Shown piece by piece: positions 1 through 51,754 of a DNA stretch of 64,000 nt. Within the stretch, counting starts at the first letter, position 1, and each line of letters begins with the position of its first letter. The notes below the pieces were generated by a model. It made no database searches. It was not told the DNA's origin and saw nothing but the letters and a program-made list of their open reading frames with translations. The stretch is from Selaginella moellendorffii. Taxonomy: Eukaryota > Plantae > Lycopodiophyta. The position numbers and the translations under genes are program-made. The stretch spans positions 382,236 to 446,235 of the forward strand of contig NW_003314321.1 of the NCBI RefSeq assembly GCF_000143415.4, read 5' to 3'.

Positions 1-285
1 ACTTTAAAATTAAAAGTTTTCAAAAGAGTATTCAATTATCTTTAGTTAAACATAATGAGAATCCAAAGCTTTTATTTTTTATAATACTATCTTTTATAGT
101 TTCAGATTAAAATTAGTGTAAATTATTTTTTCTTTACTAATTATATTTTAGTTCTAATTTTAAAAAAACACTGAGTGTGTTGATCAATATTGGATAAATA
201 ATCACTATACTATGAGAATTTGGAGTTTAATTTGAACGCCTTGTTATACAATGTAGTTTTGAATGATTTGTATATAAATAAAATT

Positions 286-1185
286 TTAATGTGTACGATA
301 GATAACAAAATCTATGCTTCCTGATAAACTACGATATAACACTAAATTTCCATCATCTTGTATAGTAAGGATAGATGGTAGTTCACATGGTGATGGGGAG
401 CAGTATTTATTAATTGTATATATTTGATCTCCATTTCTTTGATATAATACAATATTACCATCTGTTTGAAGTCTTAATTTACAACCATATTGTCCATAAT
501 TACCAGTATTGCTATTCCAATATGAAATTTTCTTTTTTACATCTACTAATTGAATTTCACAATTATTAAGCAATATTAACTCATAAAGTTTATTTGGAGA
601 AGCCTTCACTGTGCCAGGGTCCATAAAAGCAAAAGTATTATAGTCCTCTCCAGAAATCAGGCTTGAATACATAATCCAGCAATCATACAATTCTTGAGGG
701 ATTTTCTGTACTATAGTCTTGTTTGTTATAAGTTCTTTTATTGACATTTTTGGTATGGTTGATCCATATTCTAAAAAATAAAGAAGCATAAAATTAGCAT
801 TAACAATCACTAAAGCATCATAACCTTTCCATTGTGTTTTATCCTTCAAAACATGATAAATTGGGTATAAACCAGTTTTAATATCTTCTCCACCAGCACC
901 ACCATTTCTGTTAAATTGACCACTACAATATCCTTCATCATTAACAGGATTGAGAAACCATGCAGCTACAAGCACACGAAATGACCCAATCACGTTAAAA
1001 TATGCAAATGCCTGTCCATATGAATAGCTATAAGAAGAACTAATAGAATCCATCACCTCATCTAGTGTAGATAAAATAACATCCCGTGGACCACCAACTG
1101 GTATAATATCTGCAGTCCCAGCATACTCAAGCTTACCCTCAAGGCAAATAAATAAATAAATAAATATGAGAAAATTGAGTTTCAT
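286..1185 (-). CDS. Secreted chimeric protein: signal peptide + unknown N-terminal domain + C-terminal bulb-type (GNA/B-type) mannose-binding lectin, copy 1
   Basis: Intronless 299-aa ORF with hydrophobic N-terminus (MKLNFLIFIYLFICLEG). Two QxDxNxVxY motifs (QTDGNIVLY, QDDGNLVLY). Clear paralogs at 42083 and 50747. Confidence 0.85.
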   Translation of the reverse strand: MKLNFLIFIYLFICLEGKLEYAGTADIIPVGGPRDVILSTLDEVMDSISSSYSYSYGQAFAYFNVIGSFRVLVAAWFLNPVNDEGYCSGQFNRNGGAGGEDIKTGLYPIYHVLKDKTQWKGYDALVIVNANFMLLYFLEYGSTIPKMSIKELITNKTIVQKIPQELYDCWIMYSSLISGEDYNTFAFMDPGTVKASPNKLYELILLNNCEIQLVDVKKKISYWNSNTGNYGQYGCKLRLQTDGNIVLYQRNGDQIYTINKYCSPSPCELPSILTIQDDGNLVLYRSLSGSIDFVIYRTH

Positions 1186-1214
1186 ATTCTCTAGCTTTTT
1201 TCACACACACAGAC

Positions 1215-1216
<2 letters not shown>

Positions 1217-1254
<38 letters not shown>
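1217..1254. repeat. (AT)n microsatellite
   Basis: Perfect AT dinucleotide run ~30 bp upstream of the lectin-fusion ATG. Confidence 0.95.
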
Positions 1255-1260
<6 letters not shown>

Positions 1261-2833
1261 CACCTATGACATTGCCAATAAATTCAGAAACTTACAAATG
1301 TTTTAAAGACACAGGCATTGGCAATGTCAAACCTTGTTGCATTGTACAAGAAGCTAATATCTTTTAAATTATATTTCTTCCTAAAAATAAAAAGTTTATA
1401 AATTAGTTTGTTTTTGTTTTTTTTATAAAAGAAATGTAGGTCTTTTTAGTTTTGTAAGGAAAACCTATATATACTTGCCAACCTAAGTTGGTTTAAATGA
1501 GAAATGAATTGTTATATTTGCTATAATAGGGCTTTACCACCAAATTCTATCATTCCTACATTTATAACCTTCACTAAGACCCCTAAGGTATCTTTGTGTT
1601 ATTTGGATAGCCATTGTATACACTCATAAATTTCTGTGTTTAGCAAGAAAGTTATGTTGGCCTTTTGTCTTGAAATACTTCTCTTTAAATCTCTATCCCT
1701 CTACATACTTTTAAAACCAATTTATAAAAATACTTTTGAAATAATCATATTACACATACCTTTCAAATTTAGTAAATTCTTACTAAGATGACTTTCTTTA
1801 TTTGAATATAAACTAAAATCATACTAGTTGTTTTATTAAGCAGTTTATTTTTTAGAAACAAAACTCTTTCTTGATAAGAATAGTTCCACCTTAGCCAATC
1901 CAAACATGGTAGTTGATAGAGAGGTTGGCACTAATGCACCAGGTTTCCAGCTTCTCTTCTCGCTAGCAGGAATAAGGTGCCCAGCAGCTGCAGCTCACAC
2001 TCACTATGTTGCCCAACAGCCTCTAGCTGCCATGACGACCCAGCTGTGCTGCCCAGCAGCTGCAGCTCTGTGCCCAGCTTGCACCCTAGCTGGCACGGAG
2101 ACATTGTAGCAGCCACAACTAAGCTCCAGCCTCAATGGCAACTTGGCAACCACATTCCTGTCCTTTTTTTATGGCCATGGCAAGAGGATGAGGGGTCCTC
2201 TTCAAGCTCTTGGTACCTTGGCTGCTCCAGCATGCCCTTGTCATGGGTGCCACAGCTCTCATAGCAATAGCTAGTTTGACGAGATAAGTCTCTTTCCTTT
2301 ATTGATTTAGTTCTTTGTTTTTCTTTCTTGTAGGCATCAAATGAGCAAGGACATCAATGAGTAATGCAAATGTAGGGATTTAATGTGGCACAGTACCTTG
2401 TTAATGCCTTCAGAATGCATTCATTGATTAGGGGCCTTGCTGCATTATCAAATAAATTAGAAGTGGCTATGTTGAGAAGTATAAATATAAAATTAATAAA
2501 TCTATAATAATAAAAATTACACATCTGGTTTTAGAATCTTTATATGTAGCTAAAGCATAAAGGTGAAAATCTAGAAAAAGAAAAGAAAAACCAAGACTAT
2601 TAATCTCCAATCTTCCTAAACCATAAAGAAAATATTTACCTTGTTTGGTGGTCAAGGTTGGGCTATTGCTCAGCCTAGCTGTAAAGGTAGTATTGCTTGT
2701 AGCCCACTTATGCTTTCTCAACTAGGTCTATTGGGCTTCCTTGGCCATAAGGCATGCCTGGCTCACAGCCCTAATTTCTGTGTCCACTCATAACTTAGAG
2801 CACTTTGGCTATGTAGTCAAGATTATAGGAGAT

Positions 2834-2939
<106 letters not shown>

Positions 2940-3050
2940 TTGTATGTGTATGAGTGTATGGAATATAGAAATGTGCATATTTGATTAACCCAAAAACCTT
3001 AGCTAAAACTTAGACCATAAGTATATAGGAGTTTATATGGTGAATAACCG

Positions 3051-3190
3051 ATGAAACTCTATCTGTGACATATATTGAAGAAACAGTAAATAATCATCTA
3101 AGTCTGAATGTTATAAGTGTAATGAAACTCTACCTATAACATACTTATATCAAAGAAATAGTAAATAATAGTAAGTCTGAATATTATAAA
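3051..3190. repeat. ~70-bp tandem duplication (2 copies)
   Basis: ATGAAACTCTA..ACATA..AAGAAA.AGTAAATAAT..TAAGTCTGAAT.TTATAA occurs twice, ending at the TRIM insertion site. Confidence 0.75.
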
Positions 3191-3755
3191 TGTAAGTTTT
3201 TGAATTTGGACTTCCCAAAAGGTCACTCAACTCAGTACTATTAAAACCCTAGGACATTTAACCCCAAATATCCTAAAACCCTTAACCAATTGGAAAAAAG
3301 GGTGCACTTTTATTCATATCCCTTTCTTTTTATATTTAAACCCTATAAATTGTCTTTTAAGTTGTTCTTTTTTGTTATTCATAATTCACCACACTTCCCT
3401 GCAAATTCACACCCTTGTGAATAGAAGTTGAGAGCCATAGCTCTCTTGAGAATCTACCCCTTGGGTTGAGCCTAGCCGAAAGCAAATTAAACCTACCAAA
3501 TATCAAGTATGATTCCTTTAGCTAATCAACAAAGTTGAACTCAAAACTCTTTTTAATACCAAATATAAACTCATGAATTTGAACTTCCTAGGATGTCACC
3601 TAACCCAGTATTATTCAAACCCAAGGATATTTAGCCTAAGTATTTAAAACCTTTAACTAATTAAAAAAGAGGGTATATTTTTATTTATAGGCCCTTTCTC
3701 TCTATATTTGAACCCTATAAATCGTCTCTCAAGTCATTCTTTTTAGTTGCTTATA
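3191..3755 (-). mobile_element. Cassandra-like TRIM, complete (LTRs 3191-3383 and 3564-3755)
   Basis: Two ~192-bp direct repeats with 5S-like core (+ strand GGACTTCC..GGTCAC..AGTACTA..TTAAC). Degenerate iMet PBS (rc ..AATACCA) near 3561. 5-bp TSD ATAAA at 3186-3190 and 3756-3760. Confidence 0.88.
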
Positions 3756-4100
3756 ATAAATTTATGTAGTTCACGATCATTTCTTTAAAGGTCTAAATGA
3801 GTCATTCCACTAAATTATCCATTTATGGATGATAAACATTTGTGAAAGTATAACATATCTAAAGTCAAGATGTCAAGACATGAAATGCCTTAGTCATAAA
3901 TGCAAGACTATTTAAGAGAATCCACTCTAAATAAGAATGCTAGAAAACCACTCGATTAAGAAGGAAGTATCCAACAACAATCATAAATACACTAGAAAGA
4001 GCAACTTCCACTTAATAAGTCAAGTAGTTGGAGGTAATAATAATGCACTTATTACCAATAATTAATTGTGGAAAAGGCCCTTTCATATAAAATGCCACAA

Positions 4101-4664
4101 TATAATCTCATGAATTTGGACTTCTTAGGATGTTACCCATCCTAATATTACTCAAACTTAAGAACATTTAACCCCAAGTATCCCAAAACTCTTAACTAAT
4201 TGAAAAAGTGAATGCATTATTGTCTATAAACCCTTTCTTTCTATATTTGAACCTCAATAGATTATCTTTAGTTCTTTTTAGTTGCTTATAATTCACCATA
4301 TTTTTTTACAAATTCATGCCCTTGTGAATAGAAACTGAAAGGTACAATTGCCTTACTCTTTTAAAACACTACCCTTTGAGTCTAGCCCAACTTAGCAAAC
4401 TAGACTGCCAAATGTCAATATTAATATATATTATGAGTCTTTTACCCAATTAATAAAGTTGGACTTTGAGACCCCTCTAATACCAAATGTAAACTTTAGA
4501 ATTTGACTTTTCCAACTTAGTATTATTCAAACCCATAGATACTTAACCTTAAGTATCTCAAAACCATTAAATAATTGGAAAGGAGGTGACTCTTGAACGT
4601 CACTGGATCTTTTGAGTTGTTTCTTACAAATTATCTCTCAAGTCATTCTGTTTAATTGCTTACA
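4101..4664 (-). mobile_element. Cassandra-like TRIM, degenerate (LTRs ~4101-4290 and ~4488-4664)
   Basis: Same LTR and internal sequence. PBS remnant CTCTAATACCA just before 4488. First LTR has CCCATCCTA (rc TAGGATGGG, 5S C-box). No matching TSD found. Confidence 0.8.
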
Positions 4665-4965
4665 AATTTCTCAACTACATAATAATGTCTTATACGTCTA
4701 CCTAAAATAGGAGAATGATGGTAAGCGTGGAAAAAATATGGACCACAAATGGTTATCAGAATCAGTCACTTTAATGTAAAAAAGCTCATCCTCAAGACGA
4801 TATTGAGAATGTAAATGCCGAAACAATAAATTATTAGCAAATGATGCAAGATTTTCAAATTTGTGACAAAGTTTTCAAGCCTATAGTTTAACCTTTTGAG
4901 CCTTGTGAAAGTTGTCAAGAAAAGGTAAATCTAGCTTTGCACTTTGTAAACACTAAATATCAAGT

Positions 4966-5129
4966 ACTCCAACTATTGATAACATAAAATTCTCATCTAA
5001 AAAATCCATTAATGCTAGAATAATAAACATATTAGAAACATGAGAAGACTCTAACTATTGACAACATAGAATTCTCATCTAGAAAATCCACTGATGCTAG
5101 AATAACAAATATATTAGAAACATGAGAAG
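4966..5129. repeat. ~82-bp tandem duplication (2 copies)
   Basis: ACTC.AACTATTGA.AACATA.AATTCTCATCTA.AAAATCCA.T.ATGCTAGAATAA.AAA.ATATTAGAAACATGAGAAG repeated head-to-tail. Confidence 0.85.
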
Positions 5130-5229
5130 CAAGTAATAAAGGGAGAGAAGCTCAAGAAAGAGCATTAGCATCAGTCATAGAACTCCTTGGATAAAAGTCA
5201 TATATTTAGAGCTTTATAACCCACCAAAC

Positions 5230-5900
5230 AATACGACCAACCAAATTTTTTGCTTCAATAATAAAGTGATTGCAATATAATCATCTTTTAGCAATGTTTG
5301 AGAACTATGTAAGTATGCATAAATCTTCTCAAAACCCCAAATTATTATTAGACACTCTTCTATCATAGAGTAATTCACCTTCACTAGTTATAATGTACAA
5401 CTGATATAAATGATAGGATAATGCTAATTAAAACACTTATACCTTCAAGACCAATATTAGAAAAAACTATATACAAGATGAAAGGATATGCCAAAATTAA
5501 AGGAGTTGTTAACACTTCTTTTGGATCCATAAATGCCCACTTATAATTCTTAGATTAGATGAAAGACGATATGGATGACTTTAACAATGCTTGCATGGTG
5601 CAATACGATTAGAGAGGTGATTAACAAATGATCAAGATATTGCACCTTACTGAAGAAGCAATTATATTATTCATACATTTTGAAGCTAGGAACTTTAAAA
5701 TAGCTATAAGTTGTTAGGATCAATTTACAAACCTTTATGAGAAATGTGGTACTTAAGATAAATTATATTCTTAGATTCAAATATACACTTTTACCACTTC
5801 AACTTCAAACCAACTTTTTGCAGTTGATTCAACACCTTGCAAACATTACAAATGTGCTCCTCTCATGTCCCTTATGAGTGAATCAAGACATTATGGATGA
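5230..5900 (+). mobile_element. Possible highly decayed PIF/Harbinger-type DDE transposase remnant
   Basis: Manual translation gives fragments resembling the family motifs in the expected order: ..KIKGVVNTSFGSINA (cf. GAIDGTH), TLTMLAWCN (cf. LQAVCD), FLDSNIH (cf. LGDSGY). Many stops. Confidence 0.3.
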
Positions 5901-6187
5901 AATCAATAATCACCTCTAAATAAGTGATTAAATTTTTAATTCTATTTTAATCATTTAACCACACCTTTGACCATTTAAAATCTTACACACAACTTTGATG
6001 GCTCCTCACCCTAGCTTAGGGTACTTACTAAGACTCTAAACGTGGCTTCAAAGATATATTGACTATGCACTTAGTTCAAGTACTCCATATGTCTAAATTC
6101 CACATCAAACACCTAAAGGTACTATTGATATATTTTTTTACACTAAAATTACATCTATTTTTAATATTTTTTTGGTAGTCCAAAATT

Positions 6188-6643
6188 CTATATTTGAACC
6201 CTTATGGATCATCTCTCGAGTCGTTCTCTTTGGTTGCTTACAATCCACCACACTTCCCTGCAAGTTCATGCCCTCATGAACAAAAGATTAGAACTGCAGC
6301 TCTCTTGAGAGCCCTGCTCTCTTGACACCCTACCCCTCGGGTCGAGCCCAACAGAAGCAAACTAGACTTGCCAGATGTCAATCAATATGTGGTGCAATTC
6401 TTTTAGCCAACCAACAGAATCAAACCCAAAACTCGCTCCGATACCAAATGTAAGCTCTTAACTTTAGACTTCCCGAGAAATCACCCAGCTCAATACTATT
6501 CAAACCCAAGGACGTTTAACTCTAAATATCCCAAGACCCTTAACTAATTGGAAAAGAGGGTGCACTTTTGTTTATGCGCTCTTTCCCTTTATATTTAAAC
6601 TCTTATGGATCATCTCTCGAGTCGTTCTCTTTGGTTGCTTACA
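6188..6643 (-). mobile_element. Cassandra-like TRIM, one LTR truncated (intact LTR 6449-6643)
   Basis: PBS rc GCTCCGATACCA at 6435-6446. LTR TGTAAGC...GCTTACA with 5S-like core. Internal region ~205 bp; partial second LTR 6188-6242. Confidence 0.88.
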
Positions 6644-7149
6644 AAAACCATATATATCACAGTCCAATTTCTCCAAGATTAAACCCTTTATCCATAAGTG
6701 GTCACTTTATAACCATTTGTTAACATTTTTAAGATGCCCCAAGATATGAGGGAACACCATCCCCTATTATCCCTTCTTTAATGGCCACTAAATGCTTTTT
6801 TATCCATAACAATATTTACTAATAGACTATTATTGGGTTATGGCCCAAAAGTCTATCCACTAAATCCCATTAACCTCTAGGATTTCCTTATCACGTAATT
6901 ATACCTTTGATTAATGAGTAAAGGACTATTTTTCCTCCTTTTTATAGCCAAACATTAAAATGACATTTCAAAATACCCTTATAAACGATTAAACTTTCTA
7001 TTCCACACTTTTGACCACTCAGAGGAGTCTTCTCATCCTAACTTAGACCTTTATAAATCTTTCATTTGCATTCCTAGATTGAGGATCATTCTTTCTTTAG
7101 GATGGAAATTTTTTCATAAATTCTCTTAAACTTTTTCAATAGTTAAGAT

Positions 7150-7373
7150 AACTAATAAAGTTGAAACTAAGACCTCTTTAATACTAAATGTAAACTCCCG
7201 AATTTAAACTTTTAAAAAAGTCATATATTATTCAAACCTAAGTATGCTTAATCCTAAGTATCCCAAAATCATTAATTGAATGGAAAAGGAGGTGCACTTT
7301 TATCATAAACCTTTTTTTTTTATATTTGAACCTACACATATTGTTTCTTGAGTCATTCTCTTTAATTATTTAC
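7150..7373 (-). mobile_element. Cassandra-like TRIM fragment (LTR ~7189-7373 plus PBS-side internal remnant)
   Basis: Degenerate match to the LTR consensus (TGTAAACTCC..TATTCAAACC..TTAA..GGTGCACTTT..TATATTTGAACC). Confidence 0.7.
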
Positions 7374-7399
7374 TCCCATCTCTCAGAGGAGCTAAAGTT

Positions 7400-10300
7400 A
7401 GCTTTCTCTAGAAACTCATTTATTAATTATTTCATACCTATTCCTCAAGCACTTTTTTGAAAGTTTCACTCTTGCTCTCAACTCTTTAAGTCGGAGCTTT
7501 ATTCCAAATGTGTTCCATTTGTTAAACTTTTGCTTTAGCCATTTTTACATGACATACCTTCAGTTTAATTTTAGGACTCATTATGGATTACCATTTTACG
7601 TTTGGTACCAAACCACTATTATCAATGGTCTAACACCTTCATGCCTTACATATCCTTTAAGGAGCATACACCTTCCAATTTATAAACTCAATATTTCACT
7701 TTTGAAGGTTCCTTTTCTTAATTGATTTTCACTAAACCCATTAAAAATATTTTCTTCTTCTCAACCTTACTATCCATTCCAGAGTAGTCTTGAAACTTTT
7801 TGTGTCAATTTTTTAGGTGTTTTCAACACTTTTCTATACATATTATTGTTATATATAATATTCTTTACTTAAGGATACTATCTTCCTCTTCTTTATCCTA
7901 TACCAACATAGGCATTAAATTCCACCCACCATATAGAATAAATTTTTAAAAGATAATGAAGATGGACTATGGATAGGTCCAAAGTAGAAAACTCCTTATA
8001 TCTATTTTCCAAACTTAATTGCATTTACCCAATATGTATGTTTTATCTAGTAATTCAACATTCACATAACTAATATTTACCTTAGAATCTCCCAATTCTA
8101 TGCTTTTACCCATTTGACAAATTACTTAAGTGTTATCACTTTTTAAATCCATAATTTATATTAAAGCTGCTCATCCTATCTTTTGATTATATTGTTACTC
8201 TATCTTTTAGAATTTTTTATTTTTCACTATATTGGAGCATTTGGGAGTTCTATCCTTAAAAACTTACTACTACTTCCATATATCTGTTGGCACCTACCTT
8301 ATGATGGTTTTCTCCTAATTTATCATTTAGATTCTCTCTAATAATTTCTTAAGCTCCTTCCTGACCACTAGTCTTTTATTTTTGTCTTTTAGTCATTGCC
8401 ATAAACAATATAGGATTACTATCTCCATCTTTGAGGTTTTTTTTTGTTTTACAATAAAGACCTTATTTTGATAAGTCTATTTACCCCCTAGTAAGTTTTG
8501 GAACACTTACCACTGGGAGCTTTATCCACACTTTTTGAAATTACTTTCTTGAACTCACAATACTATTGTATTGTATCTAACTATTTCACCTTAAATATCC
8601 TTCCCACTTAGCCATTTTGACCAAGCCACACCTTGCCAATTGTTCAATTCACAATTTTGAATTAGGAAACTCTATTCCTTAACTTAGTAAGGAACTTATA
8701 TATTCTATATATATAATTTGATGGAGTAACTCTTTGTTAAAGAGCAAGGTAAATAAAATTCTTTAAACCAACTATAAAATCATTTAGTGATCCTCAATAG
8801 ACATCTCAAAATTTTTACTAATAAGTATTAGGTCTACCCAACCTTGAGTTGCTGACCGCATCCCTAGAAGCATCCTCCACACTTGGCGATACACTCAAAG
8901 CAGCCAAAGATCCATAACAACTTAAATTGAAACACACTAATCATGGATCATAATTTCAAAACATCCCCCACATAACAATGTGCCTAAACTAGCTTTTTCG
9001 CTAAGAGTTTATGACCAATCACCATGCCTTAGTGCCTTCTTAGCACTAGAGAATTGAAACTCTAACCCAACTTTTTTATATGCATTTATGAGTGATATCA
9101 CACAAAACACTTGGCATAACTCTAGTGCACCAAGTTTATACCTATGTTAATTAACTTCTTTTTTATATGCATGCCATAAATCACAACTTAGAAACCTTAT
9201 TTCCTTGACAAACTAGATGATCAACCTATAATCATGTATGGACTCTTCTATATTTGGCCTCTTGGGCTTTTAATTTTGAAGTTAACTCTTCAATTAGGAA
9301 ATGTTGTTCATTTGATTTGCCAATCCTACTTAGAAAATTGCTTAGCTAGTGTTATATGATTCTACGCATAAGTATCTAAATCTTTAAAATATCAATTTGT
9401 TTAAAGCCATCCCTTTGAATATGTAGAAATTATTTCCTTAACCTTGATAGCCTCATCTCATGACAAATTTCAAGACCACACTTCTGCTACGTTATTTTGA
9501 TTTTGCAACTATCTATGAACCATTTATCCTTGGCTTTCTAAATACCAATTTACTTAAATAATTTTGGAACATTGAAGGAACTCCACCCCTTCACTTGTTA
9601 AAACCTCTCCCTTCACAAGGTTTTTACTCATTATTTAGTTTAATATAGACATTTCTATATTTTAGACTTTTTATGATACTATATTTGCATGTAGTAAACC
9701 CTCAAACTCACATTTGATTTCCCACTCCCAACTTGCATAACCACTTTTTATTATGTTCTTTGATTCTTATGGTTCAATTCTATCCATTTATTGCTCTTGG
9801 CTCTATATATTACTTTTGCTTATTCTTCTCCATGTTAGGAATAATTTTACACTTTCTACTTGTGCCTTAGTAAGTATTCTTAGAGATAAACCTAATTAAA
9901 AATTTATGAAGTGGTTCCTCAATTTGGATATGTTTAACTTCTAATCCCACACACTAGGATTAATTTTGTTATTCATAAGTCCTCACATGCTTATTATTAG
10001 TAGTAAAGTCTCTTTAACCTTACCCAATTTGGATAAACAAACTTCCCCCATCTTTAGCTTTGCTTAATTTTGAATTTTAAATAGCATCTCCCATCTATTA
10101 TTCTCCAAAAACTTAGTCTTATAAGCCTTATTTAATGCCTTTATAATACCAGACACTATATTCTTGGTGTTTTATGTATTTATATGTCTCAATGATGGAC
10201 TTCTTAGGCAATAAAAATTTATTTCCATGGCAATGAATAACTATATCCTAACATAAAAAACTTATCCCTTAAAGAATATAATGAACCCCTTTTTTATCCC

Positions 10301-11390
10301 AACAAGAAATATCTTGGGAAGTTAGCTTTTACTATTTTAATCAATTATATTAAAATTATGGTTAATTATCTCATAGTTACCATATCCTACAACTCATTAC
10401 CATTGTTTCTACACCTTTATTCACATTTGGTCAAAACACTTTAATTTCATGATTTCCAGTTTAGGCTATTAATCCTGGGGTTCCCTTGGCAAAGGGTTTT
10501 TTGAATTAACCACCTTGATATACTCAAGACATCTTTTAATAAGATATTTAGTATCTTCATATCATTAACTCTATGATATAAATAATTAAAGAGAACAATT
10601 TGAGAAATGATCTATAGGGGTTCAAATATAAAAGAAAAGGGTTTAAAAATGCAACTTCTTTTTCAATTGATAGAGTTTTAGGATATTTGGGGTTAAGCAT
10701 CTTTGGATTTATATAGTACTAGATTAGGTGACCTTTTAAGAAGTCCAAACTCAAAAAACTTACATATGATTCTATCTTTCACCAAGATTATACTTTGCCA
10801 TTTCTTATGCTAAAATAACTAATATTGGCTAGCCCTTCACTATTATACTTAGATAAAACTATTTGCAAGAGTTGTTTTTCTTTGTGAACACTTTTTTATG
10901 ACTTTAGCATGACACTCTTAACCAGTAATAAGATACTCACTATTCTCATATTTAAATTTTATGAGCTTATATAGAACAAAGGGGATAATTGAGTATTGAA
11001 GTGACACTTATAATGGATAGGATATAAATACAAGAAACTATACTCAATCATTTTAGTCCTTGATTATACACAATACACCACAATGCAACTTCAATTACAT
11101 CTTTAAGACTATCCCTTAATTCTATTGAATCACATAACCTTTTGGACTTATTAGTCCTGCAACCCATAAGGTCATAACCTCATAGCTACATTGACATGCT
11201 ACTTTATTTACTTTTACCCTTAAGAACAATCCTTCTGTAACATAAGAATGTTAATTTATCTTTTAAATACACCCCTAACTCTTTGAGTTGTTCCAACATT
11301 TATAAGAAGTAGCACTCAGAGGACATGCATCCTCAACTATATTTTGACCACTCATAATGATTAAATTTAATTTCAAATTTATAAGCATCA
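7400..11390 (+). mobile_element. AT-rich, CpG-depleted decayed repeat region, possibly a LINE reverse-transcriptase remnant
   Basis: No ORFs. Weak motif-like traces in LINE RT order: near 9620 (cf. RPISLLNxD), near 10030 (cf. RQGxPLS), near 10475 CTGGGGTTCCCTT (cf. YLGVP). Confidence 0.25.
10577..10764 (+). mobile_element. Cassandra-like solo LTR
   Basis: Reverse orientation relative to the other copies: GGTTAAGCATCTTTGGATTTATATAGTACTAGATTAGGTGACCTTTTAAGAAGTCC..CTTACA. TSD TATGA at 10572-10576 and 10765-10769. Confidence 0.85.
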
Positions 11391-23192: not shown

Positions 23193-25244
23193 ATGTCGAG
23201 CGCCTGGAGAATGGCGTCTCTCATGAATGTGGATCTCTCGAAGGGCATTCTCGGCGCCAAGACCTCCAGCGCCGCGGGCCTCCGGATACTGCGCAAGCGC
23301 TCCACGGCGATTCGCAGGCGCAGCAACAGCACAGTGGCGTGCCCGGCGCTCAAGGTCGTCAACAGCGCCAGCGCGGTCCTCATCCCTCCTGTCAAGACCC
23401 CGGGCTCGATCAATCTCCTCAACGGGCAGCACCAGCCGCGGATTTTCCCGCAAGAGGGCGGCGGCGAGGAGGAGAATCTCGGCAGGCAGCTCGAGGGCTA
23501 TCTCAATTCCCCAAACGATGTGGGCCTCCTGGCTCGGGCGCTGGACGAACAGCACGGTGAGTACTTCGTGGCAATGGATGCGATCGACAGGATGAGGCGC
23601 GAGGGCGGCGCCTCTCCAGAGCTGGATCTGGCGGTGAGGAACGCGGTGGTGGCCTTGTACGCCAAGTTCGGCAGCCTGGCCGACGCTTGCAAGGCGTTTG
23701 AGAGGATCCAGCAGCCCAATGTGGAGAGCTGGAACGCGCTGCTCATTGTCTACTGCCGCCTGGGGACTTGCAACAACATCGCCCAGATCGTGGATCGGAT
23801 GCGCAGCATCGGGGTCTGGCCAAACGAGCGGACCTTCCTCACAATCTTCGAGCGAGTGCGGCACATCGAGGATGGCAAGCGGCTGGCCGAGAAGGTCAAG
23901 GAGCAGCAAGGCCTGGATCTCAGCATCGTCGGGGCGGCGCTGGTGACCATGTTTTGCCGCTTCTCCAGCGTCTCGGATGCCCGGGACGCGTTTGACAAGA
24001 TACCCGAGAAGGGCATCCCGGCCTACACGGCGATGATGGCCGGGTACGTGAACGAGAAGAAGCCCAAGGAGGCGATCGAGCTCTACCACGCTCTCCAGCA
24101 GAGCAACTTGCCAGTGACCAACACCGTGCTCGCCATCGTGCTTGGAGCGTGCTCAAACCTGGTGGACAGTGACGAGGGCCGCGCGGCTCACTACACCGCC
24201 ATCGAGCTCGGCCTCCAGGACGATCCCGTCGTCCAGAACGCGGTGGCGACGATGTACGCCAAGTGTGGAGGACTGGAGGAGGCCCGGGCGGTGTTTGACG
24301 CCATGGAGATCCGGAACGTTGACGCGCTCACCTGGTCCTCGCTCATCGGGGTCTACGGCTCGCAAGGCAAGACTGACGAATCGCTCCGGCTGGCGCGGAG
24401 GATGCAGCACGAAGGGATGATCCTGGACGGGAACTGCTTCGCCAACTTGATCTTCAGCTGCGCGAATGGCCGCCAGGACGCCGAGGCGTGCCGGTTCTTC
24501 ATGGACATGAGGAGCGACTATGGGATCGTTCCCGGCAAGGAGCACTTTGGGTGCTTGGTGGACGCGGTCGGGCGGGCCGGGCATCTCAAAGACGCGGAGG
24601 ATCTGATCAAGGCCATGCCGATGCAGCCGGACGAGCACGTATGGAGCGTGCTGTTCGCGAGCGCGCAGCTGCACGGCGACGCGCAGAGGATCCAGCGCTC
24701 GGCGGAGATCATGATGAAGATGAATCCTCAGCTGGATCCGCTGGGAACCGGCGCGAACAGGACTGCCGCTCGGTGGGAGGAGGCCAGGAAAGTGCGAGAG
24801 CTCATGAGGAAGCGCGGGATCAAGAAGGAGCCCGGGAAGAGCATGATCACGATCAACAATGTGGTGCACAGCTTCATGGCGCGCGATCGGTCGCACATCC
24901 ACACGAAGGAGATCTACGCGGAGGTGGACAGGATCACGGAGATTTGCAAGAAAGAGGAGAACTACATCCCCGACACGAGATACGTTCTCCATGACGTTCC
25001 TGAGGACCAGAAGCCCAAGCTGCTCTACTATCACAGCGAGAGATTGGCGATGGCGTATGGGCACATCGCGACGCCGCCGGGATCGGCCCTGCGGGTGATC
25101 AAGAACTTGAGAGTTTGTGGGGATTGTCACACCATCTCCAAGATGTGGGCCAAGATCATGCAGCGGGAGATTATCGTGCGAGACAATCGGAGGTTTCACC
25201 ACTTTGCGAAAGATGGTACGTGTTCTTGTGGAGATTACTGGTAA
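23193..25244 (+). CDS. PLS-class PPR protein with DYW deaminase domain (organellar C-to-U RNA editing factor)
   Basis: 683 aa. PPR repeats, PG box KKEPGKS, HSERLA, CGDCH, C-terminal CSCGDYW. Confidence 0.95.
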
Positions 25245-25360
25245 ATTAGCTACAAAAGCTTTTTCTTGTTGGCCTTGGAAATGGACGGATTGTCACACCC
25301 CAATTCTTAGAAAAATGGCTAAAGTAAAGATTTATTATAGTTTTGTTGTATCTTAAAAGG

Positions 25361-25863
25361 TTATTACTAATTATAATACTTTTTTAAAATAAAGTAATAT
25401 TTAAAAGAAACATTTAATATTTTTTGACATTTCTAAATTTTTTATATATTATTTTTTTCTTACTACTTAAGTGGCACTTTTCAAATGCAATCTAAATGTT
25501 ATAATTAAATCATAGTTTAACTACCATTGAGTGTGGGTTTTGTGAAAGAAAACAATGCAGCTTAATACAAACTATGCATGAACAACTTCACATCTAACCC
25601 TTTCACGAATATTTTTTATTCAGATGAAACTTTCAAAAACTTTATAAATATTTTTAGCTTTTAGCAACAACCTAATTCACATTGGAACATTACAAATGTT
25701 ATTTAAATAATTTTTATAACTTACTTGACAATGCACTAGACTCAAGTAGTAAAAAGAAAATAATGTATAAAAAATTTAGAAATGTCAAAAAATATTAAAT
25801 GTTTCTTTTAAATATTACTTTCTTTTAAAAAAGTATTCTAAATATTTATGCTATTAGTAATAA
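25361..25863. mobile_element. AT-rich foldback/MITE-like element with ~100-bp terminal inverted repeats
   Basis: 25376-25472 (ATACTTTTTTAAAATAAAGTAATATTTAAAAGAAACATTTAATATTTTTTGACATTTCTAAA..) is the near-perfect reverse complement of 25740-25837. The outer TTATTACTAAT also pairs. Confidence 0.7.
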
Positions 25864-27903
25864 ATGTCCCGAGGCAACACGTCCTGGAAAAAAAATGTTA
25901 CTAAATTTAATAAATAAACAACGAAAATACTTACAAATGCATTCGACTATGGGTTACTCCCGAAGACAAAGGTGTATACCTTTTTCAACTTTTCTATTTG
26001 GCCTTTCTCATATACATAGATGATGGCAGTATAGAATTCCTTACCCTTTATAATTTCGTGAGCTACCAATCCACTTGAACAAACAATAATAAGCCTAAAT
26101 AAACTAAAAAAGAAATTAATAAACCTGTATGCTATAATATCTCGTAATTCGTCATTTTCATGGTTGCTTCATCGAAATCCATATCACTCTTCTCATTGAA
26201 GATGGCGATCGCCGGCCTGTTACTAATGAATTCTTTCCACCAGTACAAAATGTTATTTTATTTTATTTTTGAGCATAGAATAAATTTAAAGCTAAAAGCA
26301 AGTGAATTTTAATTGATGTGATAAAGAATAAAAAAGTTAATTATCCCACTTTTGAAACTTTATGAAAAAAACTATGTCATAATTTCTCTATTATAACAAT
26401 CATTAACAACAATTTTAATTAAATAATTTTAATAATAAAATAATATATAGATATTAAACTTCTAAAACTAGAGTGTTCCTTTTAATTAAGTTATGAAGGA
26501 AAATTATAAAACTATTTTGACTTTTAGCAAATTTACTATATATATAATTAAAAATTAGAAAAAAAAATATTAATTTTTCTACCATTTATGTATAAAGGTT
26601 TATATATAATATATTGTATAATAACCTAAATATTTTATACTTATTCTGATAATTTAAGTACTTTTTGTGATACTAGATTTAATAAAATAACATTAATGTT
26701 ATTAAATTTTTGAAAATTATTTAAATTTTCCATGTTAACCAAAAGGTAAGTATAAATATGTTTTAAGAGAATTTCAATTATTTCAACAGCATTGATAAAT
26801 AACTATGTGTGATTTAATGTTTATATAGAACTTTTACTATAATATACTATATTAATAATGATATATCCATATAAAAAATAAAACATTTAAAATAAACTAT
26901 TGATATATTATCAAAACCAAAAACATACATGAGATTTACTAATGATAAAAAATTGTGATTGACTAACTTTTTTGTTTCATTGATAATATTGTAAAGTTGT
27001 GAAAGTATGGCTTACTCAAAATTTGATTGATGCATTTAATTTTAATTATTTAATAATTTTTCAATACAATTGTAAATAATTATAGTAGTAATTATTAAAA
27101 TGTTATATTTACTTAATTTTACTGTGTTTTTATATTTCTTATAATAAATTTCTTATACATATGTGTTTTTATATAAAAATTAAAATAAGTTTCTTTTGGG
27201 TAATATTATATATCTATAAAAATTATTATTTAATTTTGTTTTTATCAACTTTAAAAAATATTTTACTATTGAAAATTCTAGAGGTTAGCATTTGCAATAC
27301 ATATGTTATATGTTATAAATTATTCCAAATTAATGTATGTACACACACACATATATATATATACACACACACAGTAAATTTAAATGGAAAATAAAGAAAA
27401 AATTCTTCACATTAGATTATTCATGACAACAAAATTATTAAATGTGAGTAAGATCACTATAAATCCATGGATTGATTCTGACATTACAAACTTATATTTC
27501 ATCCCTTATGTGAATTCCATTATAAAATCTCCAATAGTTCACCTAATAATTAATATATTTTATTGCATTTAGGGTGTAGGGTTTAGGGTTTTTAAAAAGC
27601 ATTTTCTTCGGCTTCATAATTTCTTCCTAGATATTAAACCTCAACACAGGGTTCTCTCATGCTTTAGTTGTCTCCAATGAATAATTCTGAATTTCTAATA
27701 ACTAGAGATTTATCTAACATTAAATACATGCTAAAAGCATAACAAACTTAACATGTTTGTTGTTTGGATCAAAGAAGTTCTTGAACTGTGAGAACATGCA
27801 AGCAATAGGGAGATTCTTCAAAGCTATCAGTTAGATGCTTTCATCAACGTTCTCTCGTCAACCTTGAGTTCTACAAAAAGCCGATTTTCAATGTGGGAAA
27901 TGC

Positions 27904-28485
27904 ATGGGTGCCCTAGAATCTTGCACTTGGAAGTCTATCTTCATTCAGTTGGCTAACAGGACAAGCAAATGGGCGATAACGGGCCTAGCAACAGGATTTC
28001 TCCTCTATCGCCAAAACGATCCAGCCTCGATGTGGGCGATCACCGGCGCGCTCGCCAATGGCGCCACCTCCAAGCTCCTCAAGCAATGCATCAACCAGCA
28101 GCGCCCCATCGCCGCTGCAAACCATGCGAGACTCGATCCGGGAATGCCCTCCTCTCACGCGCAGTCTCTCGCCTACCTCTCCACGTACGCAACAATCGAG
28201 ATCGCCGGATGGAGTGGCGTCAATCCAGTGCTCTCTCTGGCGCTCAGAGCGATTGTTCTTAGCACTGCCGCCTATCTCGCTCATCTTAGAATCTCCATGG
28301 GTTTCCACACCTCCGCGCAGGTCGCGGTTGGATCGGTGATCGGGAGCTCCAGCGCTGTGATTTGGAACTGGATCTGGAGGGCGATCGTGGAGCAGCACGC
28401 GGTGAATCTGCCGTGGATGTCAAAGGCGGGATGGATGGCGTTGTTCGTCGCGGGAAGCTTAGCTCTGGCGCGAGAATCTAAATGA
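27904..28485 (+). CDS. PAP2-family lipid phosphate phosphatase (LPP-epsilon/dolichyl-diphosphatase-like)
   Basis: KxxxxxxRP (KQCINQQRP), PSSHAQ and RxxxxxHxxxQV motifs; hydrophobic segments. Confidence 0.88.
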   Translation: MGALESCTWKSIFIQLANRTSKWAITGLATGFLLYRQNDPASMWAITGALANGATSKLLKQCINQQRPIAAANHARLDPGMPSSHAQSLAYLSTYATIEIAGWSGVNPVLSLALRAIVLSTAAYLAHLRISMGFHTSAQVAVGSVIGSSSAVIWNWIWRAIVEQHAVNLPWMSKAGWMALFVAGSLALARESK

Positions 28486-31848: not shown

Positions 31849-33705
31849 TGCCCGACGTAAGATCTAAACTCCCAAGTGCTCCCTCTCACTCACTCGCCGG
31901 GATTGGAGTTTCTGGAAGAGAGAAGATCACCGCGAGGTTCCAGATTTTAGTTCTCGTGTCCCCACCACGCCGGCTCCTGTGTGGTGTTCCTTGACGGACT
32001 TCAAGGCCAGCCTCCAATCTGGTTTAATGTCGATATTGGATAGAGCGCATTGTTTTCTCATTGGCTCTCTCGCTCTCCGTTGGATATGCCACCTATTCTG
32101 GGAATCGAACCTGCCACCTTCACATAACTGAATTTATAAATGTGTAACATATAATCAAAGAAAAGAACAAGATATGATTTAAGTGATAATTTATAAAGTT
32201 TATTATGACTTTAAATAGTATGTTATATATATATTTTCTGACCTTTTGTCTGTAACCAAACATTTTAGGTTTACCGAAATTCATTTACCTGAAAAAGGAA
32301 ATAATAAGCTTTTAAAACTTTTTAAAACCTACTAAAATGCAATATCTTGTATAGATAAAATAATGGTACTTCATAAAGTTTTTAAGAACTTTTACTATCA
32401 ATCATACAAATTATATAAAATTAACTTACCGTCAAGAAAACTAAAATCAATTCATGTAATTGATATGTGTAAGATGTCATATTGAGATTCAAAAGGTAGT
32501 TGTTTACTGAAAAATGTTTTTTTTTTTGTCTACTTTATAATTGAACTTGGGCAATAAAGGATTTATCATATCATTATACTTAACAATCTTACTTAATACT
32601 AACTTTACTATATTTTTCTGTAAATAAATATAGAAATTTATTTTTTATATGTTTATTTTGTGCATATAAATTCTAAGTTGGATATAATAGAAAACTAAAA
32701 GATTAATTCTTGTTAAGCTTATTTCTTAATTAGTACTATTACTTATGATTAAACATGAAATACTACATAAAGATATGTTAAACTACAATAAGGATTCATG
32801 CCAGGATGTGCCAATCAAGGATGGAGTGAGACTTGCTTGTTCACCGTTACAGAAAGACTATATCCAGTGCGATATGTTTTAGGTCACTCTAACACTTTGC
32901 ACAAGGAAGTATGGTAAAGCTAGGCTGATTCTTCTAAACATTAGAGCTGCTGCACAGCAACCCAAGAGGCACACACACTCATGCAAATGAAGTGCAAGAA
33001 ATAAACAAGTAATGGGAGGCCAAAAAGATAAATTCCATCGATAAGCACATAGAAACATTTTTAGGGTTAAAGGTTTGAGCTATAATAGAGCACAAACTCT
33101 CCCCTAATCAAAATCCTTGGTGATTGATTATATTTATTTATTTATTATAAATATCTATATTATAAATTTAAACATAATTTGTATTAGTGATAACAATTTA
33201 CAAACTTTGAATTAAAGAAAATTCTAAAATATAGTTCCTAAATGTTTTAGGTATACGTTTTACACCTTTAGATCGCTCGAAATTTACATATGGTTTGTAT
33301 TAATGATAACAATTTACAAAGGAAGTTTAAGAGAAGCCGAATCAAAGAAATATCTAAAATATAATTTAGGAATATATTTTTTACACCTTAGCACACTATT
33401 TCTGAGTATTAGTGTAAAGCACCCCAGAGGGTTAAAGTGGGCATGGAAACGTGTCGCGTATGCGTGAAACCAGAATCAGCGGCACTCGGCGATCAACGTC
33501 TTTCTCCTGCGCTCGCCTGGTGGGTCGACTCGAGCCGGTCGATCCCCCAATCGGCAGCTGGGTCTTTTCCAAGGTATTGTTCCTTGTCTCCATAGCTAGA
33601 AGCCCTCGTTCCCAGCTCCTCAAAAATCTTTTCCAGGTGTAAGTTGAAAGCCAACCCTGCTCGGCAATTCATTGGGGTTTGAGCGGATCTACATTTCTGG
33701 ATCTA

Positions 33706-40387: not shown

Positions 40388-40835
40388 AGCAGCAAGAAAG
40401 ATCAAAGGGAGGTACTTTATTTTCTCTCATCATCCATCCATCCAGGAACCAGGAAGAACATCCCCAGCAGGAAGAACATCAGGAGCAGCAGGAGCAGCAG
40501 CAGCAGCTTGGATTGTAACAGAAACAAAATTCAGCAGCTGCAGCAGCAGCAGCAGGAGGAGGTATTAAAAGTTTTCATTTTCATTTTGGCTCTTTTTCTT
40601 TTTCTCTTTCGCCCTCCATCTTTTTGTGTGTATTCTTTCATTGAGTGAGTTCCACTTTGTGCAAAATAAGCTATTTATAATTCCTTCACATTTGATTAAT
40701 AACCACTGTTTCTTCTATCAGCAGAGAAAGAAGAATTTTCCTTGTGCAATAAATGCTAATCTAATACTAATCATAGTTAATAATAGTGCTCTGTTTCTAG
40801 GGTTCCAAGAACTCGGGCAGTCCTGCTTAGCTAGA

Positions 40836-42061: not shown

Positions 42062-42069
42062 TATAAATA
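42062..42069 (+). promoter_or_regulatory. TATA box (CCTATAAATA) upstream of lectin-fusion copy 2; conserved before copy 3 (~50726)
   Basis: Canonical plant TATA consensus conserved in both duplicates while flanking DNA has diverged. Confidence 0.6.
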
Positions 42070-42082
42070 ATATGATTTACAA

Positions 42083-43006
42083 ATGGAAAACCAAATAATG
42101 TTTTCCAGATTTAGTTTTATTAATATATTGTTTCTGATTTCCTTTTTATGCATATATTCTGAAGGTATGATTGAGTATATAGGAAAAGAGGGTGTCATAC
42201 CTGTAGGTGGTCCTCGTGATGTTATTATGTCTACCCTTGATGAAGTTATGAATCGTATCAACTCAGATTATAGTTATTCTTATGGACAAGCTTTTGCCCT
42301 TTTTAATGTGATTGGGTCATTTAGGGTGTTAGTAAGTGCCTGGTTATTAAGTCCTGTAAATGATCAAGGCTATTGTAGTGGTCAATATGATAAATTTGCT
42401 GGAGCTTCTGGTGATGATTTTAAAAATGGTTTATGGCCTATTTACCATGTACTCAAAGATGTAAGCACATGGAAGGGGTATGATGCTATAGTTATAGTTA
42501 ATGCAAATTTTATGGTTTTCTATTATTTAAGATATGGTTCAGAAATACCAAACTTAAACATTTTAAAGATTAATGGGTCAGAAACTTCAGATATTATAAA
42601 TCCCCAGGATTTTTATGATTGTTCAATATCATATACAGGTCTTATTACTGGAGATGATTATAATACATTTGCAGTTATGGAACCAGGTACAACAAAATCA
42701 TCACCAAATAAACATTATGAATTAATTCTACAACATAATTGTGAGCTTATATTTATGGATGTGATAAACGATGAGATAAAGTTCAAAGCTGGTAATGGTA
42801 ATGGAGGGCAATATGGTTGTAAATTAAGACTCCAATCAGATGGAAATTTAGTATTATATCAAATAGATGGAACATCAATTTGGAGTGTAAATGAGTATTG
42901 TTCTCCATCACCTTGTGAATTAGTATCTGTTTTAGCTATTCAAGATGATGGAAACTTAGTGTTGTATCGTTGTTTGAATGGTCATGTGGCATGGTCTTTA
43001 TGGTAG
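42083..43006 (+). CDS. Secreted unknown-domain + B-type lectin fusion, copy 2
   Basis: 307-aa intronless ORF with signal peptide and QSDGNLVLY, QDDGNLVLY motifs. Paralogous to 286-1185. Confidence 0.85.
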   Translation: MENQIMFSRFSFINILFLISFLCIYSEGMIEYIGKEGVIPVGGPRDVIMSTLDEVMNRINSDYSYSYGQAFALFNVIGSFRVLVSAWLLSPVNDQGYCSGQYDKFAGASGDDFKNGLWPIYHVLKDVSTWKGYDAIVIVNANFMVFYYLRYGSEIPNLNILKINGSETSDIINPQDFYDCSISYTGLITGDDYNTFAVMEPGTTKSSPNKHYELILQHNCELIFMDVINDEIKFKAGNGNGGQYGCKLRLQSDGNLVLYQIDGTSIWSVNEYCSPSPCELVSVLAIQDDGNLVLYRCLNGHVAWSLW

Positions 43007-43088
43007 AGCACAGATTTATAAGATTCAAAACAATCAATAAAAAAGAGAATGTTTGTGCATTCCTTTAAAATCTAGGGCCATACTGAGC

Positions 43089-43172: not shown

Positions 43173-43239
43173 GAGGCTCATCATCCTCAATAGTTAATTA
43201 TAGACCTCTGTTTCTAAGGTTTGAATTGCATTCCACGCT

Positions 43240-49649: not shown

Positions 49650-50746
49650 CTTCCAAAAGAATAAAGTAAAAGTGAAAAATAAAATTAGACTTAATATTAA
49701 ACATATTTATGAGTAAAGCAAGTTTCAACTTTTGGCTGTATAAAACTCATTTATAACATAACGATAAGCAAAATCCACTCATTGTTAAAAGAAACAACAA
49801 AAATAACTGAAGAAAGACAGAATAAAGGATAAAAATCAATAAAAATAACTGAAGAAAGATAGAAAAAAGGAAAAGAATGATTTTATGTTCAATACTTTAG
49901 ATTCTAAATATATAATAGGGGTAGGTTGGATGGCTCATAATTGGAGTTTAAATGTTTTAAGATTGTTTTAATGTTGTTATTTATATGCTTTCAGTTTTTA
50001 TTTATATGCTCAAGAATTTAACTCTATCCCTTCATTTAGTGGTTTAAAGCCTTGAAACTTAAATCCTACTTTATTAATGCCAAAGGTTATACTCCACTTT
50101 TTTAGTTATCAAGTATAAGGTCAAAACTATATACGTTATAAAGCTTTGATACAATTGCTATAATTTGCTGATGATAGTGCACTCATAATCAATATCATTA
50201 AACATATTAGTAAACTGCTAAACAAAATGATTGAAATATTGGAAAACAAGGTCCAACTCTTTTCAAAAAGGGTAGGGAAACTATAAGCAATCAAAGAAAA
50301 CAAATTTGAGAGATAATCCATTTAAGTTTAAATATAGAGGAATGGGGTTAAATGTTATTAGGACTTCTCATGAAGTTTAATTCAAAAATTTACATTAGGT
50401 ATTAGAGGATAATTACATCATAATAATTATATTATATAATTATTATTATTTAGTATATATATACAAAACTTCTTTTAGCTTCAAAAATGTTATAGATTTA
50501 AATATGTTAGTAGTTAGTAAGGTATTTATTGTTGATAATTTTTCCCAAATTATATATAGTAAAAGAGGCAGTAATAAATTAAATTTAACAGAAAAGGTTT
50601 AAATTGATGTGCACATATTTATTATTTATTATTTATTAATTTAATCAGGAGAATATATGAGAGTTCATTTTTTATATAATCTTGTCACTTTTGATAAATC
50701 CATGTTAAAACTAATTTATAATACCTATAAATAATATACATTAAAA

Positions 50747-51667
50747 ATGCAAAACAGAATAATGATTTCCAGATTTCTTTTTATTAATCTATTTCTAATT
50801 TCTTTTTTATGCATATATTCTGAATGTATGGTTGAGTATATAGGAAAAGAGGGTGTCATACCTGTAGGTGGTCCTCGTAACATTATTATATCTACCCTTG
50901 ATGAAGTTATGAATCTTATTAGCTCAGATTATAGTTATTCTTATGGACAAGCTTTTGCCCTTTTTAATGTGATTGGATCATTTAGGGTGTTAGTAAGTGC
51001 ATGGTTATTAAGTCCTGTAAATGATCAAGGCTATTGTAGTGGTCAATATGATAAATTTGCTGGAGCTTCTGGTGATGATTTTAAAAATGGTTTATGGCCT
51101 ATTTATCATGTACTCAATGATATAAGCACATGGAAGGGGTATGATGCTATAGTTATAGTTAATGCAAATTTTATGGTTTTCTATTATTTAAGATATGGTT
51201 CAGAAATACCAAACTTAAACATTTTAAAGATTAATGGGTCAGAAACTTCAGATATTATAAATCCCCAGGATTTTTATGATTGTTCAATATCATTTACAGG
51301 TCTTATTACTGGAGATGATTATAATACATTTGCAGTTATGGAACCAGGCACAACAAAATTTTCACCAAATAAACATTATGAATTAATTCTACTACATAAT
51401 TGTGAGCTTGTATTTATGGATGTGATTAAAGATGAGGAAAAGTTTAAAGCCGGTAATGGTAATGAAGGGCAATATGGTTGTAAATTAAGACTCCAATCGG
51501 ATGGAAATTTAGTATTATATAAGAAAGATGGAACATCAAGTTGGAATATAAATAAATATTGTTCTCCATCACCTTGTGAATTAGTATCTGTTTTAGCTAT
51601 TCAAGATGATGGAAACTTAGTGTTGTATCGTAGTTTGAATGGCCATGTGGCATGGTCTTTATGGTAG
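50747..51667 (+). CDS. Secreted unknown-domain + B-type lectin fusion, copy 3
   Basis: 306-aa intronless ORF, highly similar to copy 2, with two QxDxNxVxY motifs. Confidence 0.85.
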   Translation: MQNRIMISRFLFINLFLISFLCIYSECMVEYIGKEGVIPVGGPRNIIISTLDEVMNLISSDYSYSYGQAFALFNVIGSFRVLVSAWLLSPVNDQGYCSGQYDKFAGASGDDFKNGLWPIYHVLNDISTWKGYDAIVIVNANFMVFYYLRYGSEIPNLNILKINGSETSDIINPQDFYDCSISFTGLITGDDYNTFAVMEPGTTKFSPNKHYELILLHNCELVFMDVIKDEEKFKAGNGNEGQYGCKLRLQSDGNLVLYKKDGTSSWNINKYCSPSPCELVSVLAIQDDGNLVLYRSLNGHVAWSLW

Positions 51668-51754
51668 AGCACGGATCTCATGTGCATTATAAGATTCAAA
51701 ATAATACATTACATAATCATTAAAATAGTAAATCTAGGGTTATACTGCCAGGGC

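Follow-up and report, generated by a model that had tools for sequence, protein, structure and literature searches.

Do the three single-exon open reading frames (ORFs) that stand out in this stretch of Selaginella moellendorffii DNA encode a protein family of the plant's own, and if so, what might that family do? The stretch, hereafter the window, comprises 64,000 nucleotides (nt; positions 382,236 to 446,235 of contig NW_003314321.1), and the ORFs in it are called copies 1 to 3. We propose that they belong to an unannotated, lineage-restricted family of secreted chimerolectins in S. moellendorffii, which is normally silent and has a role in defence; to this reading as a whole we assign a probability of roughly 0.55. 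That the ORFs are real genes and encode the two-domain architecture described below is, taken alone, a claim in which we have high confidence. The glycan-targeted mechanism of defence that we outline is put forward more tentatively, at somewhat less than even odds and by analogy with known systems.

Each protein opens with a hydrophobic leader, followed by an N-terminal domain (N-domain) of ~130 amino acids (aa), a variable linker and a ~130-aa lectin of the GNA type. All N-termini contain a 12-residue stretch with a mean Kyte-Doolittle hydropathy of 2.6–2.8, and, judged by hydropathy, the leader fits a putative signal peptide. The N-domain is the best-conserved part of the protein, with 66–71% identity among the old paralogues, among which we count a fourth copy found on another scaffold. 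The linker, of ~15–25 residues, is variable and carries a single N-x-S/T sequon in each paralogue. Over the whole protein, copies 2 and 3 are 91% identical, and copy 1 is 61% identical to either. Six cysteines are invariant in all four mature paralogues: one in the N-domain, one at the start of the lectin, two that form the canonical lectin pair and two in a CSPSPC/CKSPC turn. The N-domain cysteine and the lectin-start cysteine sit on either side of the variable linker.

The sequence matches identify the C-terminal ~130 aa as a true GNA-type (bulb-type) lectin. A full-length phmmer search returned 3247 matches at E≤0.001, the best 150 of which all fall on residues ~183–306. The closest solved structure is garlic agglutinin (1BWU; E 4.4e-12 over 88 residues), and next to it among the best matches in the Protein Data Bank (PDB) stand other monocot mannose-binding lectins, GAFP-1 of Gastrodia and two bacteriocins, putidacin L1 and pyocin L1. 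The canonical cysteine pair, with one member in the first sugar-binding motif and the other before the second, aligns with that of garlic agglutinin. Two of the three QxDxNxVxY mannose-binding motifs are intact in every copy and the first is degenerate: copy 1 reads LNNCEIQLV, QTDGNIVLY and QDDGNLVLY, and copy 2 reads QHNCELIFM, QSDGNLVLY and QDDGNLVLY. Partial loss of sites is frequent among GNA-type lectins. Pfam family PF01453 (B_lectin) matches the three proteins at E 1.6e-4 to 9e-4 (20–22.5 bits), and at E≤1 the full-length proteins have no other Pfam match apart from one due to chance. A preliminary description of this DNA had placed copies at 286, 42083 and 50747, each with a leader, an unassignable N-domain, a linker and a GNA lectin with two intact sites and one degenerate site (LNNCEIQLV or QHNCELIFM). 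The ORFs lie at exactly these places and the motifs read exactly as described; the layout, too, is supported.

Table 1. Positions of the three ORFs and of their parts, numbered from the first letter of the window.
Feature	Positions	Strand	Remarks
Copy 1, complete single-exon ORF	286..1185	-	299 aa; stop codon at 286-288
Copy 1, hydrophobic leader (putative signal peptide)	1135..1185	-	residues 1 to ~17; hydropathy maximum 2.58 at residues 5-16
Copy 1, N-domain core	745..1137	-	residues 17-147; from alignment of paralogues
Copy 1, variable linker	700..744	-	N-glycosylation sequon NKT at residue 155
Copy 1, GNA-type lectin (beta-prism II)	289..699	-	sites at 544-570 (degenerate), 442-468 and 334-360 (intact)
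Copy 2, TATA-like box TATAAATA	42062..42069	+	14 nt upstream of start codon, in the ~35-nt upstream stretch common to copy 3
Copy 2, complete single-exon ORF	42083..43006	+	307 aa
Copy 2, N-domain core	42164..42556	+	from alignment of paralogues
Copy 2, GNA-type lectin	42602..43003	+	sites at 42731-42757 (degenerate), 42833-42859 and 42941-42967 (intact)
Copy 3, TATA-like box TATAAATA	50726..50733	+	upstream of copy 3
Copy 3, complete single-exon ORF	50747..51667	+	306 aa
Copy 3, N-domain core	50825..51217	+	from alignment of paralogues
Copy 3, GNA-type lectin	51263..51664	+	sites at 51392-51418 (degenerate), 51494-51520 and 51602-51628 (intact)

The case that these are genes rests on the length of the open frames and on the way in which they have diverged. 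At the composition of the ORFs the probability of a stop is 0.083 per codon (one per 12 codons), which gives 307 open codons a probability of ~3e-12, and in 2000 shuffles no open run exceeded 162 codons. Throughout the first 11 kb of the window (28–36% GC), copy 1 is the sole ORF of at least 150 aa. Its nucleotide likeness to copies 2 and 3 ends at the limits of the ORF, which argues that what has been conserved is a gene and not a repeat unit. Ratios of nonsynonymous to synonymous divergence (dN/dS) were calculated by the Nei-Gojobori method for copies 1 to 3 and the fourth paralogue (L002:4341-5249). They are 0.21–0.34 for the old pairs, formed among copy 1, copies 2/3 and the fourth paralogue, with a saturated dS of ~1–1.5, and 0.41 for the young pair of copies 2 and 3 (dS 0.10). 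By domain, dN/dS is 0.18–0.27 in the N-domain and 0.24–0.46 in the lectin, and dN is 0.22–0.28 in the former versus 0.30–0.35 in the latter. Both domains are under constraint, and the genes have been kept by purifying selection. Frames that stay open far beyond chance, combined with dN/dS of 0.21–0.34, thus mark the ORFs as real genes under selection. Every copy has a TATA-like element 14–55 nt upstream of its ATG. Long (TA)n microsatellites lie on the upstream side of copy 1, at 1186–1255 and 2832–2935; the (TA)n tract at ~1200–1250 precedes the start codon by ~30 nt and occupies the place of the TATA box in the other copies.

Public annotation has captured only the ends of these genes. The family is represented by two database proteins, of which P0124 (112 aa) corresponds to the C-terminal end of copy 1 and P0224 (82 aa), which carries the names SELMODRAFT_117471, SELMODRAFT_84226 and 'bulb-type lectin domain-containing protein', to that of the fourth paralogue. 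Both map to scaffolds of assembly GCA_000143415.2, in which the DNA of copy 1 is that of GL378091.1, the contig end excepted. A full two-domain ORF of 302 aa, the fourth paralogue, surrounds P0224 at L002:4341-5249 (GL377621.1). Exact-protein look-ups across the collection found no called gene for any of the four full-length products; since P0124 and P0224 are lectin-only fragments, public annotation therefore holds lectin stubs of 82–112 aa only. A search of one literature library found no mention of the annotated fragments or of this two-domain architecture in Selaginella. On GL377571.1, the scaffold of the second haplotype, the allele or a near-identical copy of the fourth paralogue is split near codon 72 by a ~5.6-kb insertion that contains a called 173-aa 'Transferase' fragment. 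The two pieces (L003:3719-3937 and L003:9551-10246) are both open and are 92–97% identical to the intact copy, and the splitting of this allele suggests that copies are gained and lost quickly. Within the 64-kb window, tblastn found no additional copy, whole or relict.

What, then, is the domain that the lectin accompanies? By sequence comparison it is an orphan, with relatives undetected in the proteins, families and contigs searched, a set to which plant genome collections do not belong. A word-indexed search of 5.8 billion proteins, queried with the N-domain part of the full-length protein as well as a four-sequence profile, found no relative of the N-domain among candidates of 87–537 aa. 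None of the best 150 of the 3247 phmmer matches falls on the N-domain, so that it has no relative above ~76 bits among 1.84 billion representatives; weaker ones could hide below. Family searches at E≤10 in Pfam (all four paralogues), NCBIfam and PHROGs returned no match to the domain, nor did the PDB, by single sequence or by profile, and a feature search of the ESM Atlas gave no usable match. Back-translated pattern scans with two alignments did not find it in metagenome, prokaryotic-genome or viral contigs. The two halves of the domain have no detectable kinship that would point to an internal duplication. Because B-lectins in the databases are often fused to wall hydrolases, the N-domain profile was compared with such partners, and hhalign gave a probability of at most 0.2% for NlpC/P60, CHAP, M23, astacin and unassigned B-lectin partners alike. 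The partner alignments also held lectin domains, and the idea that the N-domain is a second B-lectin fared no better against lectin-containing alignments (≤0.2%). The domain does have the Cys...His...Asp/Asn order of papain and NlpC, but its predicted secondary structure does not fit theirs.

Structure prediction yielded no confident model. Both AlphaFold2 models, built from three and from four sequences, place helices at ~18–31 and 83–98 (domain numbering) and end in a C-terminal hairpin. They conflict at residues 40–61, which are a helix in one and a strand in the other; in our reading the residue pattern there favours strands. Foldseek against the PDB and VIA-align-wide returned only noise for the low-confidence model. 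A complex prediction of the N-domain with the lectin domain scored 0.04, which is no usable answer and no evidence either way.

One specific identity had been suggested for the N-domain. The preliminary description likened it to the KP4 killer toxin, which would make it a divergent, cysteine-poor KP4/ECP2-type fold and the whole protein an AB-type antifungal toxin, in which the lectin delivers a KP4-like channel-blocking domain. The KP4 and HCE2 families of Pfam are defined by conserved patterns of cysteine, glycine and aromatic residues, with four Cys, three Gly and two aromatic motifs in KP4 and three Cys in HCE2 (PMC12382754). KP4 and Zt-KP4-1 share a five-stranded antiparallel sheet on two antiparallel helices, stapled by disulfides, and KP4-like genes occur in a moss (PMC12382754). 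The KP4/ECP2 (HCE2) proteins that fungi and mosses secrete are small alpha/beta domains, as the N-domain is predicted to be, and its order of predicted elements is compatible with theirs: the second AlphaFold2 model runs helix, strand, strand, long loop, helix, strand, strand, and the first has an extra short N-terminal strand, an order that fits a five-stranded sheet with two helices. The same order is common to many alpha/beta folds, and the two models differ over residues 40–61. None of the four paralogous N-domains matches KP4 (PF09044) or HCE2 (PF14856) at E≤10, and the Cys/Gly/aromatic pattern is missing together with its disulfides, since the N-domain core has a single cysteine with one more at the lectin boundary. 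The AlphaFold and Foldseek check that had been recommended gave mean predicted local distance difference test (pLDDT) values of 41 and 40; KP4 entries are missing from the Foldseek and VIA-align lists, though the underlying model is too poor for this to count. Judged by sequence, the N-domain falls outside the KP4 family, and we regard the KP4-type toxin as very improbable. From the preliminary description the secreted-looking two-domain layout in three copies is thus supported, and the kinship to KP4 is not.

The composition of the genes bears on how they are kept. At 31–32% GC, with a GC content at third codon positions (GC3) of 0.18–0.21 and an observed/expected (o/e) CpG ratio of 0.13–0.23, they have an excess of TpG and CpA. 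The neighbouring genes (KCS, two PPR genes, a leucine-rich repeat (LRR) receptor kinase and PAP2) have a GC3 of 0.58–0.85 and a CpG o/e of 0.78–1.04. To the right of copies 2 and 3 the flanking DNA is 47–52% GC, which indicates that AT-richness belongs to the genes themselves and not to a broad region. All four paralogues share the low-GC3, CpG-poor composition despite saturated synonymous divergence, and the repeat-rich DNA adjoining copy 1 has the same pattern (CpG o/e 0.18 over 1–11000). We infer that the loss of CpG is the pattern left by long-term cytosine methylation and silencing in the germline. Recent horizontal transfer was considered as a cause of the AT-richness. A donor-like relative is absent for both domains, and among lectin matches the top single-domain scores of plant and of other proteins are much alike (about 40–50 bits), so recent transfer is not the explanation; the composition shared by the paralogues across saturated synonymous divergence also speaks against it. 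Other AT-rich pockets (21–32% GC) lie between GC-rich genes at 25000–28000 and 32000–33000; in the pocket at 25000–27900 the CpG o/e is 0.71, well above that of the lectin genes or of 1–11000.

Several results weigh against the proposal of a secreted defence family, and we collect them here. Three raw RNA sequencing (RNA-seq) runs of S. moellendorffii, of unspecified tissue and condition, were sampled at ~9 million reads each and mapped to 39000–44400. Depth was zero across 41534–42981, and hence over copy 2, in all three, and a run index lists no RNA run that contains the copy 2 stretch; its three matching runs are tiny and of unspecified kind, and one of them also matches intergenic DNA. The lectin scores for PF01453 lie under the family's gathering cut-off of 32.4 bits. 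The mean pLDDT of the AlphaFold2 models (41 with three sequences, 40 with four) and the ESMFold2 value for the N-domain (under 50) are low. The split allele of the fourth paralogue implies that individual copies are dispensable. Finally, the family is known so far from S. moellendorffii alone, plant genome collections lying outside the searched set.

The silence extends to copy 3. In the same runs the neighbouring receptor kinase reached a depth of 100–300 and PAP2 a depth of 5–27. Every 150-nt window of 42221–42768 shows at least 95% identity between copies 2 and 3, so that reads from copy 3 would map there, where depth is zero. A few reads at 42982–43173 carry copy 3-type letters and end exactly at the limit of homology between copies 2 and 3; their source is the PPR gene that follows copy 3, and they represent its 5' end. 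Transcription of that PPR gene accordingly begins at the stop codon of copy 3 or immediately after it. In the three sampled runs, transcripts are thus absent for copies 2 and 3, a result that covers these two copies and not copy 1 or the fourth paralogue. The preliminary description had staked its reading on the genes being expressed; the zero reads for copies 2 and 3 do not bear this out in these runs and are compatible with conditional expression.

Silence of this kind invites two other explanations. The genes might have no host function at all and be selfish or passenger ORFs in AT-rich, methylated transposon islands, or else a decaying family. Such an origin would sit well with CpG depletion and AT-richness like those of the surrounding repeat-rich DNA, with the expression data, with the origin of copy 2 via a ~1.2-kb unit that carries the start of the neighbouring PPR gene, and with the one paralogue allele that is broken by an insertion. 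We nevertheless consider it quite improbable, because purifying selection has acted on both domains over saturated synonymous divergence and because copy 1 is the only ORF of at least 150 aa in 11 kb of stop-rich DNA. The copies have neither a transposase or reverse transcriptase nor terminal repeats or common flanks beside them, a signal peptide joined to a sugar-binding lectin is not a known layout of transposons or plant viruses, and copies 2 and 3 adjoin normal GC-rich genes, so that their composition is their own and not regional.

Alternatively, the product could be a real, stage-specific lectin of the cell surface or of storage (in spore, gametophyte, strobilus or rhizophore) and not a toxin, with an N-domain that serves assembly or binds an endogenous ligand. 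Many lectins of the GNA family in plants are storage or cell-surface proteins, family and profile searches gave the N-domain no toxin-like signature, and silence in runs of unstated tissue fits narrow developmental expression. Rapid turnover of copy number and presence or absence of intact alleles are, on the other hand, more typical of defence families, and the variable linker flanked by cysteines may recall lectin toxins that are processed into two chains. On balance we think a developmental lectin unlikely. By analogy with antifungal and insecticidal GNA-type lectins, with bacteriocins and with enzyme-lectin fusions, defence is the most likely role.

For the defence family that we favour, we propose the following mechanism. 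Each gene, a single exon behind its own TATA-like element, would be off in ordinary tissue and expressed conditionally, whether induced or stage-specific. The encoded protein would enter the secretory pathway. Its first folded part is predicted to be an alpha/beta domain of ~130 aa without detected relatives, and its second part a beta-prism II lectin that appears to keep two of the three canonical mannose sites and the disulfide of the family. This lectin may attach to the mannose-rich glycans of a surface that is foreign to the plant, for example that of a fungal wall, insect gut or microbe, and would thereby position the N-domain, the candidate carrier of an effector activity or at least of one specific to the family. 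It is also possible that the N-domain cysteine and the lectin-start cysteine, which in copy 1 are Cys87 and Cys169, form an inter-domain disulfide across the glycosylated linker.

Known systems resemble the family in part. The likeness to monocot GNA-type lectins (garlic 1BWU and 1KJ1, snowdrop GNA 1MSA and GAFP-1 1XD5) extends across the whole beta-prism II domain, that is, the C-terminal ~110–130 aa (E down to 4e-12), and includes the cysteine pair and two intact QxDxNxVxY sites. These monocot proteins are single or double lectins that lack the N-terminal domain of ~130 aa. The Selaginella family differs from them further in its one degenerate site, in an extra CSPSPC pair and in ~17 residues inserted close to the beginning of the lectin domain. 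The lectin-like bacteriocins putidacin L1 (LlpA, 3M7H) and pyocin L1 (4LE7), which the Selaginella lectin matches at E ~1e-8, are secreted B-lectin killers that target a sugar on the surface of the victim; they are tandem lectins, and the Selaginella protein is not, its N-domain having no profile similarity to lectin domains. B-lectins fused to enzyme or effector domains (NlpC/P60, CHAP, M23, astacin) are numerous in the databases. These bacterial and eukaryotic fusions, those with VanY among them, follow the same plan, in which the B-lectin has a catalytic or effector partner; the Selaginella N-domain has no detectable similarity to their modules. Taken with antifungal GAFP-1 and the lectin-like bacteriocins, such fusions make an activity delivered by a lectin a known design.

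The surroundings of copies 2 and 3 record how the young pair arose. The duplicated unit extends from ~35 nt upstream of the ATG, TATA box included, to ~170–230 nt past the stop codon and takes in the transcript start of the PPR gene (43007–43173 versus 51668–51870), with deletions in the version beside copy 2; the PPR ORF downstream of copy 3 occupies 51821–53110. The 3' part of PAP2 and its repeat (40900–41740 and 43300–44065) bracket copy 2 together with the AT-rich DNA upstream of it, the 3' part of PAP2 having been duplicated with its downstream DNA in blocks that are 92–100% identical and recur with a period of ~2.3 kb. A transposon around copy 2 was considered and rejected, as terminal inverted repeats and transposon genes are absent and only the PAP2 3' duplication is present. 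A more distant PAP2 paralogue lies at 27904–28485. In the LRR receptor-like kinase gene (38301–40387), reads confirm a 65-nt GT..AG intron at 39600–39664, and about a dozen positions are split ~50:50 among the reads, as expected for two haplotypes. A family of short repeats is dispersed through the window in direct and inverted orientation, at 3191–4358, 6194–6640, 10672–10757, 46746–47280 and 63517–63713.

These genes matter in part for what has been overlooked: lectin surveys rely on gene models, and where the models are stubs, a chimerolectin architecture and a conserved domain with no relative detected among billions of sequences have been missed. They also indicate that a plant can retain genes with the composition of silenced repeats (GC3 ~0.19, CpG o/e ~0.2), under purifying selection and beside genes at GC3 0.6–0.85, which raises the question of how and when such genes are switched on. 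A bolder idea, which we rate as distinctly unlikely, is that they form a private arsenal of two-part lectin toxins, each with a new fold, a cleavable linker with its disulfide and a mannose-binding delivery module, stored silent in methylated, AT-rich, transposon-like DNA and released on attack. If true, such an arsenal would be to the plant what effector compartments are to the two-speed genomes of fungi. Should the N-domain prove to kill or inhibit, it would represent a new effector fold that comes with its own module for targeting glycans.
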